The notes beneath the pieces were generated by a model. The model was not told the DNA's origin, did not search any database, and was given only the letters and a program-made list of their open reading frames with translations. Made by a program: the position numbers and the translations under genes. A DNA stretch of 64,000 bases from Phallusia mammillata (lineage: Eukaryota). Positions 37,020-44,700 of this stretch are shown here, piece after piece; position 1 is the stretch's first letter, and each line of letters starts with the position of its first letter. The stretch spans positions 11,966,001 through 12,030,000 of the forward strand of contig OZ281498.1 of NCBI GenBank assembly GCA_965637545.1, written 5' to 3'.

Positions 37020-38062
37020 CTCGGGTTGGGAACCACTGCTCTGAAGAATGTAGGCTAATGTATTCGACCCAATAGACAAAAGTTTATCTTGCTTTTACAA
37101 AATATCTTTGGAATATTAACCTATAAAGCACGGTGCGGTCAGTCATATCGTTCTCTTGGCCTGCAAGGTGAATATGTAGCTCTGCAAAGTCGTTAGACAA
37201 AAAGCAATAAATTCTGAACGAAATAGTAAACCGGAACGGCAATGGAAATTGGTTGCCAAAGAAACTATTTGAGGCTGGATCCATCGGCCATAATTTGACC
37301 TACAATCATTAAAAAAGAATAATTATAAATACACTGTGCTAAAAATAAAATCTCCGATTTGATTTTGCAAAAGAAAGTACAAAAAAGGGCTAATTTAAGC
37401 GAATGGATCAAATTTAGATTATAGCCTATAGGCCCTAGGGAAAAAAGGCCTACAAAACTTGACAGGTCAACAATTTCACATTACCCCCACTTTGTCTTTT
37501 GTATTTGTAAAACAAGCTCCAATCTTGTTGTTTTGTGTACAACTTATCATGGAATCCATTGAATATCTCAACAGATACCACCGACTTTTGAAAAATACGT
37601 CTTTTAAAAACAGAACAGTGAAAAACGGGAAAATTCCCTTTCCAAAGACCACTTTAAATTTCAGCTATTTTGGTAACCTCGCGTGCGGTGTGTGTTACTT
37701 AAAAAGGAGGAAGCTCATCTAAAAACGTGCAAAACAATTGCAACAAGTATCGTCACCCACATTATTTTTGGCTGTTGCTTCAAAAAATGTGTGCATAGCG
37801 ATACCCTTGCTTCTTTGACTTTGTAACACTGTTTTTTTACACGTCGTTGGCAACTGACGTACTTTATGAAGTTTGTTTAATAGTATACTAATGTCTGTAA
37901 ATGTATATCACTTGCAGTAAAAGGGCAGACGAATACCGAAAGTGTAACGAAGTTCCCCAAATTAGGCTTTAAATTTTGGTAAAGTTATGCAAACAAAACA
38001 TATGTTGGATTACTGTTTGTAATTGCACTCGGGCGATTGCCAGAAATTTTCACTTGTTCGAA

Positions 38063-41000
38063 ATGAAAGAAAGTTTGATGGAAATTCCATGCAAAAATAA
38101 TCATTATTTTCAAAACTGGTCACAAACATATTCATGCAAACCAGAATTATATTTTGAACCAAGATGTACAGATGATCTGCGAGTAATACTATTAGAGGCG
38201 AAACAACTGAAGAAAAAGGTATGTGCAGAGTTATTGGGAGTTAAGGCTGTTTTTTAATTTTACAGTCTAATTAATAGCAAACAAATATGATTAGATACAC
38301 TGCTTGTTTTAATTTTTTGCTACTCAATTATTGTACATTAAGGTAAAGGTTGTTGGTGGCGGTCTTTCACCTTCTGATATTGCTTGCACCAATCATTTTA
38401 TGATTTCAATGAAGCTCTTTAATAAGATTTTAGAAATTGACAAGACAAACTGTGTAATTACAGTTGAATCAGGTGTGTCATAAAATCCAAATGCATTTGT
38501 GACTAAGCAATAACATGCTGTCTGTTTTCAACAATTAATTGACACTTCTTGTAAGTTAAATTTACCAAAAATGATTCTGTATCTCTGAAAATATCTGATG
38601 ACTTGTTAGATCATTCATAAAAACAATCTGTCTGCTGTACACTAAAGTCTGCCTGCTGCACTAAAAAGACTAAGATGTCATTAGTGATTAACATGTGTCT
38701 ATGCGATTGTGGTTACCTTATAATTAAAACTGTTACAATCTTGGTTTAGCATATTAGAGGATATCCACATCATTGAAATTTTATATGTGTATGGATACAA
38801 AACAGTTTTTGCTATGACTTTTAGGAGTTACAATTTACCAGCTTAACAATCATGTCCTTCCATCGAATGGTTTGGCATTGAGCAATATGGGTTCAGTATC
38901 TGGCCAGTGTGTGGGTGGAATTATTGGCACTGGTACCCATGGTACTGGAGGCAATTTTGGATCATTTGCCTCTTGTGTGCTGGAAGTTACTTTTATGATT
39001 TCGGATGGTATTGTTAGTTTTGTAATGCACAGTATCAATTTCAGTTGACAGAAAATATGCATTGATTGCAGGGTCAATAATTAAGTGTTCAAAAGAAAAA
39101 AATGGTGAACTGTTTCAAGCTGTCTGCTGCCATCTTGGACTACTAGGCATCATTCTAGTAGTTAAGATTCAGGCAAGTTTACTGATGACAATACTGTAGA
39201 TTTTCTAAATTTTATTTTATTATTTTAATTTGTACAGTGTGAACCAGCATTTAAACTGCATTTGAAACAAGCCTCTGGTTTGCTTGAAGATAATCTGGTT
39301 GATTTAAAGTCACTTATTTCTCAGTCTCAACATTTTCGATTTTTCTGGTTTCCACACACAGGTAAGGAGTGCTTTTTTGTTTGATAATAATTCATTGAAT
39401 AGACCTGAAGTGAACCAAAGTGGTCTTAATTATCTGGTTTTACATAGATTATGTTGTAAACTTCATGGCCGATCGGACTAAAAGACCTTCAAAGGAAGGT
39501 GGCAGTTGGTTCTGGTCTCAACTTGTTGGTCACTATGTGCTTGAGTTTTTTCTGTGGGTTTCAACATTTTTCCCTTGTCTTGTGCCTTTTATTAATCGTC
39601 TCTTTTTTAAAATGTGCTATTCAGGTATGTAAAACAAAATGCTTTTGTTTGTTCGCGTTTTGGTGGTTGCCAACTGCACTATTTAATGTTTTTTAGATAA
39701 AATTCTAGGTTGCTTGCTAAAAGAAATTAACTGTTGGTGCTAATCAGCATGAAATGTTTTAGATTTGAAATTGTTGCCTTGATTTGAGAAATGCAATCCA
39801 CAGTTAGCTAATGTTTAAATAATGACACAGGCCCAAATTACAGGGTCATCCGAAAGTGTGCGCAGAAGTGATCGAGTTTTTACCTTTGACTGTTTGTTCA
39901 AGCAATATGTAACTGAATGGGCAATACCTCAACAAAATACTGTTACTGTCCTTAGGAAAATGAGAGAGTGGATTATTGCAAATTCTCATGTTAAGGTGGG
40001 TAAAATATGTTAAGGCCATGTCTTTCAGATGGCAGAAATTTTTTAGATTTGAAGGTTAAGTGATTATGATTTTGCTGAAACGTTAAACAAACGCCTCTGA
40101 TTGATGTTGGTTTGATTTAAGTTAAGTTTATTTGCGCTCGGTGAAACAATCGTAGTAACACAGTAGCACTAAAATTTTCATCTTGCCGAAACTAGTTGTG
40201 CAAAGTTAAGACATGTTCTGACAAATGCTGCTGTAAATAAACTCTGGTGCATCTACATGTGTTTACAGCCACTTTGCTTAAAAAACGGACTGATAAATAA
40301 GCTCTAAGGGAAGCAACTTTTGCGCCACGGTACCTTTCGGTAATGTGGTGTGTTCATGCCGTTTGCTAAATGGTGACAGTGCAGTAGAAATTTTGCTATG
40401 TAATTTTTAATTTCCTCAGCTTGCAGGATGTTACTGCCTATATCAGTCCGAATATGATTTCCTATTCATCCCACGTTTTTCGCGCAGCTGAGAATAATTG
40501 ATGGATAGCTTTTTGATAGCGTGAAAATGCACTCACGTGCAATAGCACTGTTACATATTTAAATGTTAAACCTGATTATACTGTTTTGTTCTGCAACGTA
40601 ATACGCTTTATTTAGGTAATTTCCCAATATTTGTGTTTACCGTTTTATGTAGACAGTGTTTTTTTAAGGTGTTTTGGGGGACCATTTCTCCAGCGGTTTC
40701 CCAAAATTTGCCAGTAGCCTAATAAATAATTCGTTTAAGCAAATATGGCTATTTTTTGGTATTTAAATGAAACACTTGCGGTCTCTTAAAACTACTTAGC
40801 GGTCACCCAAACCAAACCTTAAAAAAACCCTGTAGGTACACTTTCCAGTAGAAGTTCGATTTGTCAAACAAGATGGAATTATGCTCGCCCCATCAGGAGA
40901 TGAAGACGTCACTTACATCGGAATCATATCCTTCAGGTTTATTACCGTGTCAAAAGTATTGAGCATTTTTTCGTGAACAGAAAATTCTTACAGCTAGTTT

Positions 41001-41770
41001 TTTTTATTGTTTAGACCATACGGCAAAATCGTTCCACACGATGAGTGGTGGAATTTCTTTGAAAACTTGGCAACTGAATATGGAGGGAAACCGCACTGGG
41101 CAAAAGCACACAAGGTATTCGCTGTTTTCTGTTTTGAACACGCTGTTCCAAACGTTGCGTTTATGATTAACTCTTGTTGATGTTGTACAACAGGAGCATT
41201 GAGAGGTTTCGTTGCACTTTCGTTGCACATTGGCACTTTGTTGTTGTTGTTGTTTGTTTCATTTTTATCCTCGGTGGGCGTTCAAAGCCTGAATGCGTTA
41301 TGCTCTCAATGAGTCCGACGTCGAGCTGCCTGTTTTTATTGCAAGCCCGATGATCATTTTTTATTTGATTTTTTCAAATTGAGGCAGTTGGTGACTTCAA
41401 TTTAGTTCAACCCATCGGGAACCACTTGGGTTGGAGCAATGCCGCTTAAGTTTCTTGCTCAGGGAAACACAAGCAACCGAGATAGGATTAGAACCCATGA
41501 CCTTGTGATCAAGGCGGTTGCGTTAACCACTCGGCCAACTTGGCGGCTATTTAAGGATTTTCTTCTTGCGTATAATTTTAACTACTTGTTTTACGCATAA
41601 TGTTAAAGGTTAAAGCTGACGATTTTCGAAGAATGTACCCAAAGTTTGATCGTTTCATGGAAATCAGAAGACAACTTGATCCAACATGTATGTTTTGGAA
41701 TGATTACTGGCGGCGTGTAATGGGCAAGGATGGTTTCCACATGGTGGCGCCAGAGAAACAACGATTGTAA
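38063..41770 (+). CDS. GULO: L-gulono-1,4-lactone oxidase-like aldonolactone oxidoreductase, intact ORF (10 exons)
   Basis: [104 protein letters not shown] and LDPTCMF; stop at 41770. All junctions are phase-compatible, with a GC-AG intron at 39173-39237. Start is at 38063 or 38078. Confidence 0.92.
41235..41548 (-). mobile_element. tRNA-derived SINE with CORE-like body and (CAA)n tail, in the last GULO intron
   Basis: Minus strand has an A-box-like gttggccgagtggttaacgc, a B-box-like gggttctaatcc, the CORE-like gtgtttccctgagcaagaaacttaa, and a caa repeat tail. Confidence 0.7.
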
Positions 41771-44700
41771 CAAAGTGCATTTATGTTGAGATGTAAGAAA
41801 TGTGTGTATTTCGGCACAACTCATTTTATTAATACTTGAATTGCTTATCTGCTTTTGCTGCTCATAATTCTTCGAAATTTTTTTGATTGTGCTTTTATCA
41901 GGGCCTATTGCAATGTTTATTCTCGCAGTTCAATTTTATTACCTTGCTTCTATTTTGTTTTGTCACTTTGGTGTAAGCAGTGTTTGTTTGGTATTGATTT
42001 TAAGGAGCCTGTTTTTTTGAGTGAATTAAAGAATAATGTGCTGTGCAGGTAAATTGTGCTGTAACAGAAACAACGTTTGGAAGCGTGTGCTTATATAGGT
42101 GTAATCGGTGCGCATTTCCTAAAATGTAACTGATGCTGTATATGTTATTACCCTTGTGTTATAAACGATGGATCGAAGAAGCTACGGCTGGTTGGTCGAT
42201 ATTCCTGTGTATCTATATCCGTCGCTACCTGGCTTGTCCAAGGAACTGCAGTTACTACTCAATAAAACGCGTCGTTGTAACACACGGAAACCCAGGGCAA
42301 CTCTATTTATTATCTTTAAAAAAATGAACAAATAGGCTGTAGGTTTTTTGATATGTGCTTTTTGTCAAGTTAAGCATCTTTATTGACCTAAAACCAACTT
42401 GACGAATTATCCGATTGTCAAGTAAAGACTGGAAATCGTAACTTTCTTCGGTTCACCACCACTTCGATTTTCCATATCATCGAGGATTTAATCTCAGGTT
42501 GATTATCAGACATTTGGATTACGATATGGCTCAACGTTGGAGCGAACACTTTTCAGATCAATAACATACGACACCCTACCGTCATCATGTCACTGTTTCC
42601 ATCTGTCATTTTCAACTTCACTCACCATTTCTTCGCCCGTTTTCATGTATCTCTCTTTGTTCCTTGATTTTTAATCTTTGCATCAAGAGGCAATTCACTG
42701 AAACCACTAGAAAACCTATCCGTTATTTTTAATATTTTGGGGGGGTAATTTTTTTGTGTGTGTCACTGGCATCAAAGTATTGAACTTTTTCAGACAAACC
42801 TAACATATTGATTAATTACTTTCTCATAAAACTAATTGGACATTAAAGTTTAATAAACCCACTGTAAAAATTGCTTTTCGTTGCATTGAAAATTGATTAA
42901 TGCCATGAATTGTTTTCATTACAGTTTTGTCATAATTAGCACCGTTGCAAAATTGAGTGGCGTGAAGGAAAATACTTGTAAATAATTTTCTTGCTGTTAT
43001 CTTTGTATGTGAGTCAAAAAAGCTTTGCATTTGCAAATACGAATGCGGTCATTATTTTCTTTGTTAATCTTCTTAATTGCCTTTTGTACACTTTACACAT
43101 GAAATTGTCAGCTGCAGAAATCTTAACGTAGGTAAAAATATGGAGTCACATGCTTTATTCCGACACCATGCCACTGAAAAACAAATAACTTAATTACAAT
43201 TAAAATCCCCCTTAGATTTGTACTAATTAGCAATTTTCGTACATTGGCGCTTATTTGACATGATTAGTCATTACCGGTACACAAAGATGTACATTGTGTT
43301 GTTCAAAAGGATTGATTTTTCTAATACTATCTGTGTTTGATAATGAACTCGGCTTTGCCGTTTACTTCCGTGATTTTATACAGTGTTGTTTTGTGGTTCT
43401 GTAATTACAGGATCTCGAAACAACCGTAACGAAAGATCGACCGTAAACCCTGTTTTATTGCACTCGGCTGTCTTTGTTACTTGTGATTCTTTCACAACTA
43501 CTGTTTGTACCGTTTTGTACAGGGGGAAGTTAGGGAAATGTTTGTGAAGTATTTTATTGCTCGATCACATCCAACGGGCAGTCACTGTTTCGTCTGTCTT
43601 GCTTCCTTGATAGAACTGTCACATCAAGATCGTTTTTCCTGCGTGACATGTGCGGCTTGCAAACAACGCCATGTAATTCTGCATAATTTAGTGGGCTCTG
43701 CTTGGGCGTAAGCAGCAATTACCGTTGAATTTAATGCAAATTAAATCTTGTGTGGAAGAGAGGCCATGAAATATTGATAGCGGGGTCTAAATTTCAACAG
43801 ATGAAACTTTACCAAACGACATAGTTGGTCGCATGCAAGGGCATCTAAGCAAGTTGTAATCATAAAAAACACAGATTTTTTAACAGATAGTGTTTTCCAC
43901 AGAAAAATAATTGGGGTCAAACTCGTACGCGCTTTCTGTCTAAATTAGTGGCTGGCATCGATTGGAGTTTCACACAAATAATCCAGTTAGTGAATTTGCA
44001 GCCTTTTATGCATTTAAGGTTGAAACAGGTGCACCATAATAGAGCTTACTTCAACAATTATTTTCACCAGCAAACGCAAGGACACAGTGGATCTTATATC
44101 AAGGAAAATAGTCGGCATCTCGATTTGATAGCCGGCAAATGGAATCGATCCATTTTTGCGCTGAAACGCCTTCGTCTCATTACGGTGCTGCATCTTCCAC
44201 CCGTCATCCAAACACTTTGTTAATGGGGTATGTGGCGGTTCGGAACGCTCTTCGCTTTTGGACGCAGGTCACCGACGCTTCGCGATGAAGGCGCGAATAT
44301 TCGGGCAAATGGAAAACCAATACCACAGGGTACAACTACGCTGTCTCGGGGGGATTACGTCCATAATTACGAACCAGCCTTCTTTCTTCTGCGCAAATAA
44401 CATCGTCATTCTTTGTCAGCTTCCCTCCCTGCGTTGAAATTGAGAGTGAGCGTGGTCGTTGCGTCATACAGAACGAGAGGTTTAATGTTGGTACAAGCAT
44501 AACACCAATAATGTAAGGTCGAAAGGTACACAACGGTGTAAAGAGACTTGTGATGCAACAAATGTGTTCAAGAATATGCATACTGAAAGTCGATCCATAA
44601 TGTAATGCCGAAACTAGAAATGCATGATCATAAAGGTAACGGTTTCGCTGCGTTTCAGTGCTTTATGCGTTTTTCACAAAGCGATACGCGTTGGCTTGTT

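Follow-up and report, generated by a model that had tools for sequence, protein, structure and literature searches.

Can the L-gulonolactone oxidase (GULO) of an animal dispense with the histidine to which its flavin is bonded, and what kind of enzyme would then be left? The question is raised by a gene of the ascidian Phallusia mammillata, which lies in a window of 64,000 nucleotides (the whole stretch of DNA analysed here: assembly GCA_965637545.1, contig OZ281498.1, positions 11,966,001 to 12,030,000 of the forward strand; all positions below are counted from its first letter). An earlier reading of the letters, made without database searches and called here the sequence-only reading, had noticed a leucine in place of this histidine. 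It had proposed an animal vitamin C pathway oxidase with a non-covalent flavin, a hybrid state that it did not recognise in animals.

According to the current account, set out in two papers of 2024 (PMC11099136, PMC11505616), covalently bound flavin adenine dinucleotide (FAD) separates the animal and fungal enzymes from those of plants. Covalent flavinylation is traced to a Leu-to-His replacement in the opisthokont ancestor, after which the Gly/His pair and an Asn in the substrate pocket are described as conserved (PMC11099136). The same paper reports that the natural plant enzyme, L-galactono-1,4-lactone dehydrogenase (GalDH, or GLDH), uses cytochrome c and has a strictly conserved Ala at the oxygen gate. 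Ala113 blocks the access of oxygen to the flavin, and the A113G variant of GalDH has oxidase rates 15 to 200 times as high, on a par with GULO. At the substrate site the sole conspicuous difference is that between Gly413 and Asn363, and the Michaelis constant (KM) for L-gulonolactone is selectively lowered by G413N. Across the family, every covalent member has His at the flavinylation position, and the non-covalent ones have Leu or Lys; rat GULO apoprotein given non-covalent FAD is as active as the covalent holoenzyme (PMC11505616). GULO has been lost repeatedly in animals, and HWAK versus HWGK serves as a criterion for its recognition (PMC6582580).

Two active-site replacements shared by ascidians

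The active-site positions tabulated by Boverio et al. 2024 (PMC11099136, Supplementary Table 4) were followed through an alignment of 126 sequences, in mouse numbering. At two of them Phallusia, Ciona intestinalis and C. savignyi carry replacements: Leu stands for His54 in 3/3, and Gly stands for the pocket residue Asn363 in 3/3, as it does in plant GalDH. In Phallusia these residues are Leu60 and Gly370. Leu60 aligns with the Leu of GSGLSP in the solved plant and ancestral GalDH structures, which bears out the likeness to plant GLDH proposed in the sequence-only reading; the pocket change is absent from that reading. Phallusia and both Ciona species keep Pro56, the gate Gly111, Ser112, Cys300, Gln304, Glu308, Glu340, Arg342, Ile365 and HWAK, and in both Ciona all 11 other tabulated positions are retained (nine active-site residues plus the His and Ala of HWAK). 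Three elements that the sequence-only reading had listed as intact, namely the gate Gly in SNMGS (Gly118), PVEVRF and HWAK, are indeed present.

Set against the features of animal GULO, the ascidian proteins thus have HWAK rather than HWGK and the gate Gly, and lack the flavinylation His and the pocket Asn. Set against the plant-type set Leu56/Ala113/Gly413, they have the Leu and the second Gly, with Gly in place of the gate Ala. The resulting Leu/Gly/Gly triad is that of the engineered GalDH A113G (PDB 8QNC). Among the non-tunicate animal GULOs sampled, Asn363 is kept in 117 of 118 and His54 in about nine of ten, and the Asn363-to-Gly change is therefore the rarer of the two among animals and the more GalDH-like.

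The remainder of the protein is strongly conserved. In the 118 other animal GULOs, 61 columns reach a conservation of 95% or more. The ascidians retain 56-57 of these and share no departures other than L330M, N370G (mouse N363) and Y386W. As judged from this alignment, the pattern is what would be expected of an enzyme under constraint that has undergone specific changes, and not of one in decay.

Support for the codon and the gene model

The gene consists of ten coding exons (coding sequence 38063-41770, plus strand) with an intact open reading frame (ORF) of 461 codons and nine introns, eight of them GT-AG and one GC-AG. The leucine in an otherwise intact gene thus stands as first described: CTT in exon 2 encodes Leu60. 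A check of this codon in sequencing data, which had been recommended along with the original observation, gave the same answer. Contigs from two DNA runs (X3, X4) and two probable RNA runs (X6, X13), belonging to four studies, were compared with the window over 37900-41900, and not one base difference was found at the codon in any of them. The DNA runs X3 and X4 differ from the window at other sites near the gene and therefore come from individuals other than that of the window. In the spliced RNA contigs eight of the nine introns are removed exactly, and the transcript extends beyond 41900. Because the codon is unchanged in four runs and the introns are skipped in RNA, the Leu codon is real and the gene is expressed and spliced as modelled.

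Coding polymorphisms among the runs number three synonymous and two non-synonymous (E7K and S246L, at 38081 and 39490), the other coding polymorphic sites being 38200, 38865 and 41018; there are no stops or frameshifts. The window protein is 99.6% identical to UniProt A0A6F9DF31, a 461-residue "L-gulonolactone oxidase" of Phallusia mammillata, from which it differs at residues 7 and 246 only, both of them polymorphisms seen in run X3. This cDNA-derived entry has the K7/L246 alleles and the same Leu60. It was recovered with a profile built from exon references and two guide proteins, which in a local test ranked the window protein high.

Protein identity, domains and fold

A search with A0A6F9DF31 returned C. 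intestinalis XP_002122023.1 (60% identity) and C. savignyi H2ZBD3 (61%), followed by amphioxus at 53% and by molluscs, sharks, amphibians, echinoderms, cnidarians and others at 44-51%; tunicates other than Phallusia and Ciona do not appear among the best 120 matches listed. A representative search restricted to exon 2 yielded relatives of at most 62% identity, several of them non-His variants, and nothing identical. A word search limited to residues 45-100 matched the query alone and carries no information on other Leu-bearing proteins.

Exons 2-3 match PF01565 (FAD_binding_4) above the gathering score, which places the protein among the VAO/PCMH-type flavoproteins. Six exons (5-10) match PF04030 (ALO), with HWAK at residues 402-405 and Glu347 and Arg349 present, as in the aldonolactone oxidoreductases. 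The N-terminus lacks a mitochondrial presequence: the ORF begins 17 residues before the conserved NW motif and is preceded by an in-frame stop.

An AlphaFold2 model was obtained with a mean predicted local distance difference test score (pLDDT) of 92.8 and a predicted template modelling score (pTM) of 0.91. It has template modelling (TM) scores of 0.72-0.86 to GalDH, alditol oxidase and DprE1, which share the two-domain VAO fold, and its best fold matches are 8QNC and 8QNB (TM 0.84-0.86 at 25-26% identity). 8QNC, the A113G variant of ancestral GalDH, is also the best PDB sequence match (E 3e-50), and in that alignment Leu60/Gly118/Gly370 pair with Leu56/Gly113/Gly413. Neither of the two PDB searches, by sequence and by fold, returned a GULO structure.

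Recurrent loss of the flavin anchor in animal GULOs

A maximum-likelihood tree was built from 80 sequences by a quick search under LG+C20 with posterior mean site frequencies (PMSF), with Shimodaira-Hasegawa-like approximate likelihood ratio (SH-aLRT) support; fungi and bacteria were included, and GalDH sequences were not. The three ascidians form one clade (support 100) within an animal GULO clade of 71 rows (support 99), and the fungi and bacteria fall outside it. The tree leaves the ascidian position within animals unsettled; attachment is near a rotifer, likely a long-branch effect. His and Asn occur together in amphioxus, vertebrates, echinoderms, hemichordates, molluscs, a sponge, a placozoan and most sampled cnidarians. 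Given this wide distribution, the ascidian Leu and Gly are secondary changes and not ancestral states that were kept.

Residues other than His also occupy the site elsewhere in the clade. Nematostella vectensis (P0258) and the nematode Romanomermis (P0060) have Tyr, and the tubeworm Lamellibrachia (P0005) has Cys. Transcriptome proteins carry Leu or Tyr among hexacorals, Asn among octocorals, Cys or Arg in a clade that holds molluscs, and Leu or Phe beside chelicerates. The exon 2 search added the myxozoan Henneguya (P0024, Arg) and fragments with Leu, Gln, Asn or Cys, and the non-His members of the animal clade include P0212, P0217, P0225, P0285, P0303, P0082 and P0296. Leu variants trace to SRR19411310, SRR12053377 and GCA_000205965.1; by its place in the tree, one Leu variant may belong to a chelicerate-related lineage and another to a hexacoral. 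The last of these sources, an animal-like draft assembly, holds a 104-residue ORF fragment with GSG-L-SPS (L001, contig ADGO01187120.1).

By parsimony on the tree, His and non-His states have been exchanged at least nine times. About 8% of the other animal GULOs sampled are non-His, a figure that is only indicative because the sample was drawn from the best matches to a Leu-bearing query and is biased accordingly. All the same, the flavin anchor has been lost repeatedly in invertebrate GULOs, and its repeated loss within the animal clade shows it to be dispensable. For the Tyr or Cys variants a different covalent flavin link could in principle be conceived. Apart from the ascidians, all non-His animal GULOs whose sequence reaches the pocket keep Asn363 (the Henneguya and Lamellibrachia fragments do not include that position), and among the animals sampled Gly at this position is confined to the ascidians and the octocoral Dendronephthya gigantea. 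The Dendronephthya protein (P0241) has an unusual combination of its own: His is kept and Asn363 is replaced by Gly, the residue at the oxygen gate is Pro, and HWGK takes the place of HWAK.

In the light of these results the state described in the sequence-only reading can no longer be called unrecognised in animals. The same Leu is present in the public C. intestinalis RefSeq protein XP_002122023.1 and in C. savignyi, and other residues occur in several further lineages. In the alignment of tunicate and other invertebrate GULOs suggested at the time, Leu is common to three ascidians, and it is neither private to Phallusia nor the only departure from His.

A proposed explanation

We propose that the Phallusia gene is an animal L-gulonolactone oxidase orthologue with two ascidian replacements, which binds FAD non-covalently and acts as an oxidase, and we give this reading as a whole a probability of roughly 0.7. 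The gene is intact, spliced and expressed, and appears to be under purifying selection. In an ascidian lineage including at least Phallusia and Ciona, the His of the 8-alpha-N1-histidyl FAD bond gave way to Leu and the pocket Asn to Gly, and the Gly that admits oxygen to the flavin was retained. Deprived of the anchoring His, the enzyme would hold FAD non-covalently. This is a sensible inference, since the only known covalent FAD-anchoring residue of the family is replaced while the oxidase-type gate Gly, the Glu-Arg pair and HWAK are kept. Oxygen should still reach N5-C4a of the flavin, and the enzyme should therefore go on forming H2O2 as an oxidase. Without the Asn side chain the binding of L-gulonolactone would be weaker, and preference might then shift or broaden toward L-galactono-1,4-lactone.

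These steps differ in their strength. That the protein is a functional orthologue of animal GULO, the last enzyme of ascorbate synthesis, is very probable on the evidence of clade, domains and conserved residues. Non-covalent binding of FAD, by analogy with plant GalDH and the trypanosome enzymes, is only slightly less so. By comparison with the engineered GalDH, the ascidian enzyme is probably still an H2O2-forming oxidase. A shifted substrate preference, with lower affinity for L-gulono-1,4-lactone and a turn toward L-galactono-1,4-lactone or at least a broader range, is a tentative suggestion to which we give somewhat less than even odds. Of the proposal that Phallusia has an animal vitamin C pathway oxidase with non-covalent flavin, then, membership in the animal GULO clade, expression, replacement of the anchor His and retention of the oxidase-type gate are observed, and the non-covalent state itself is predicted from sequence.

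Several points weigh against this explanation. A covalent bond through another residue would be compatible with the sequence. The substrate prediction, its weakest step, carries the effect of G413N over from GalDH to GULO, and PMC11099136 reports no converse exchange of N for G in a GULO. The same paper describes residues around the flavin other than the gate as tuning oxygen reactivity too. The tunicate evidence spans Phallusia and two Ciona species.

Alternatives to a functional oxidase with non-covalent FAD begin with the codon itself. CTT is one base away from CAT, which might raise the suspicion of a wrong base in the reads or the assembly, or of a mutation confined to the individual sequenced. 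The chance of this is negligible: two DNA and two RNA contig sets, drawn from four studies and differing from the window elsewhere, all have the same codon, and Leu recurs in the cDNA-derived UniProt entry and in two Ciona species, which together refute it. A plant- or protist-type GLDH, acquired or surviving as an ancient paralogue, would account for Leu at position 56 and Gly at 413, both of them GalDH states, and for the GalDHs found as best solved-structure matches. The PDB searches, however, returned no GULO structure, so that GalDH is simply the nearest solved relative, and at 25-26% identity. The protein is instead 50-53% identical to amphioxus, shark and mollusc GULO, falls within the animal clade of the tree described above, has Gly instead of GalDH's strictly conserved gate Ala and lacks a mitochondrial presequence, and this origin is accordingly most improbable. 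Decay, or loss of the enzymatic role, in which the missing anchor would be a step toward the loss of GULO as in primates or teleosts, finds some encouragement in the recurrence of such losses in animals (PMC6582580), in the alteration of two strongly conserved functional residues and in the lack of further tunicates among the best 120 matches. Against it stand an ORF of 461 intact codons and a spliced mRNA in several runs, the maintenance of both substitutions in Phallusia and two Ciona species despite only 60% overall identity, the retention of all other catalytic residues and nearly all near-invariant columns, and a within-species coding polymorphism of 3 synonymous to 2 non-synonymous differences free of stops and frameshifts; we give it little credence. 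Sequencing error, pseudogene and GalDH acquisition were thus considered and rejected.

Two further alternatives accept a working enzyme and concern its flavin. Members of the VAO superfamily use several flavin attachment sites and chemistries, His422 of VAO being one example (PMC11505616), and the ascidian enzyme might still be covalently flavinylated through another residue or chemistry. This is unlikely, at about the same level as decay: His at this position is the only known link in aldonolactone oxidoreductases, every characterised Leu or Lys member releases its flavin (PMC11505616), and no new ascidian-shared His, Cys or Tyr is seen among the strongly conserved columns. Somewhat less improbable, though still well short of a favoured account, is an enzyme that holds FAD non-covalently and works in vivo mainly as a dehydrogenase with an acceptor other than O2. 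Covalent linkage raises the redox power of flavin in the superfamily (PMC11505616), so its loss could reduce oxidase efficiency, and the tuning of O2 reactivity by residues other than the gate points the same way (PMC11099136). Yet the gate Gly is kept in 3/3 ascidians, and GalDH A113G, with the same Leu/Gly pair, attains GULO-like oxidase rates (PMC11099136).

Implications and relation to earlier work

The ascidian enzymes, conserved and expressed as they are, depart from two of the three stated rules for animal GULO (His and pocket Asn, with the gate Gly kept); the His rule is also broken in several further lineages of invertebrates. Such proteins offer natural experiments on why covalent flavinylation is kept or dropped and on the coupling of flavin redox tuning with oxygen reactivity. 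The pocket change offers another, on whether a single residue sets the preference for gulono- over galactonolactone in a GULO background, and it raises the question of which lactone a non-vertebrate chordate oxidises to ascorbate. A bolder and, in our estimate, unlikely version can also be put forward. Ascidians may have rebuilt the last vitamin C step into a natural copy of GalDH A113G: an oxidase with non-covalent FAD and a pocket that prefers L-galactono-1,4-lactone or some other lactone than the gulono form, which would imply an upstream route other than the textbook glucuronate-gulonate pathway. More broadly, animal GULOs would have abandoned covalent flavinylation on at least nine occasions.

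The gene and its protein, Leu included, are already public and annotated; what is new is how the residues are read. A 2011 review cites the Ciona protein by accession and only for its 48% identity to chicken. No mention of the tunicate Leu or Gly, or of non-His residues in animal GULOs, was found in a literature search with targeted reading of evolutionary surveys, reviews and the 2024 structural paper, and other literature may differ. A search of the supplementary data of PMC11099136 yielded no Ciona or tunicate entry; its sequence list includes Nematostella and Dendronephthya. No characterisation of any non-His animal GULO was found in the literature searched.

Features of the locus

Coordinates of the gene and of its principal residues are collected in Table 1.

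Table 1. Features of the Phallusia mammillata GULO gene, in window positions
Feature	Position	Strand	Basis
GULO gene, from first base in RNA contigs to stop codon	37916..41770	+	
Coding exon 1, Met1-Lys52, start of FAD-binding domain	38063..38218	+	Gene model, RNA joint 38218/38343
Coding exon 2, FAD_binding_4 with GGG-L-SPS motif	38343..38472	+	Pfam PF01565 E 3.6e-06, RNA joints
Leu60 (CTT), flavinylation-His position (mouse His54, GalDH Leu56)	38364..38366	+	Contigs of four runs, alignments
Coding exon 3, FAD_binding_4 with oxygen-gate residue	38825..39007	+	Pfam PF01565 E 1.7e-06, RNA joints
Gly118, oxygen-gate position (mouse Gly111, GalDH Ala113)	38890..38892	+	Alignments; role from PMC11099136
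Coding exon 4, followed by GC-AG intron 39173-39237	39072..39172	+	Gene model, RNA contig numbering 616-714
Coding exon 5, start of ALO domain	39238..39361	+	Pfam PF04030, RNA joint
Coding exon 6, ALO domain	39448..39624	+	Gene model, RNA contigs, Pfam
Coding exon 7, ALO domain, gating-loop Cys307, Gln311, Glu315	39844..39995	+	Gene model, RNA contigs, Pfam, alignment
Coding exon 8, Glu347-x-Arg349 (PVEVRF, 40845-40862) and substrate-pocket position	40836..40936	+	Gene model, RNA contigs, Pfam, alignment
Gly370 (GGA), substrate-specificity position (mouse Asn363, GalDH Gly413)	40920..40922	+	Alignments; role from PMC11099136
Coding exon 9 with HWAK motif (41094-41105)	41015..41114	+	Gene model, RNA contigs, Pfam, alignment
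Coding exon 10 and stop codon	41609..41770	+	Gene model, RNA contigs, Pfam

For the GC-AG intron, with the donor CAG/GCAAGT in an otherwise GT-AG gene, the RNA contig numbering agrees with removal. RNA contigs of two runs both start exactly at the first base of the gene given in Table 1, after an acceptor-like TTGCAG (site at 37910-37916) and 147 nucleotides before the ATG; the site could be a trans-splice acceptor for a spliced leader, with contigs breaking at the common leader, or the edge of an unseen upstream exon. Intron 7 carries an 11-base insertion polymorphism behind 40330. In two intronic stretches, 40580-40847 and 41250-41650, summed DNA contig depths run from thousands to hundreds of thousands with many variant joints, and these stretches are high-copy interspersed repeats; a tRNA scan and an internal repeat scan of them found nothing.

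Comparison with known systems

One group for comparison consists of the other non-His animal GULOs, with Tyr in Nematostella and Romanomermis, Cys in Lamellibrachia, Arg in Henneguya and various residues in the transcriptome proteins. They belong to the same clade and are altered at the same site; unlike the ascidians, they keep Asn363 wherever their sequence covers the pocket. The galactonolactone/arabinonolactone oxidases of Trypanosoma cruzi and T. brucei, likened here from published descriptions, also lack the flavinylation His and hold their flavin non-covalently (PMC11505616, PMC6582580), but they are glycosomal protist enzymes with Lys at the site and HWGK (PMC6582580, PMC11505616).

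Vertebrate GULO (rat and mouse; UniProt P58710) falls in the same orthologous clade, the Phallusia protein being 45-50% identical to vertebrate GULOs. It shares the two Pfam domains, the gate Gly, the Cys and Gln of the gating loop, the Glu-Arg pair, Ile365 and HWAK. It differs in its His54, which is Leu in ascidians and leaves them no 8-alpha-N1-histidyl FAD site, and in its Asn363, which is Gly. Plant GalDH, conversely, has the Leu adjoining the dimethylbenzene ring of the flavin and Gly at substrate position 413 in common with the ascidian protein, whereas its gate is Ala and its acceptor cytochrome c, and the ascidian protein, with Gly at the gate, is 25-26% identical to it, lacks a mitochondrial presequence and lies in the animal GULO clade. 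Once the gate Gly of the ascidians is counted, the triad becomes that of the engineered GalDH A113G (8QNC), the top match in the PDB in both sequence and fold.

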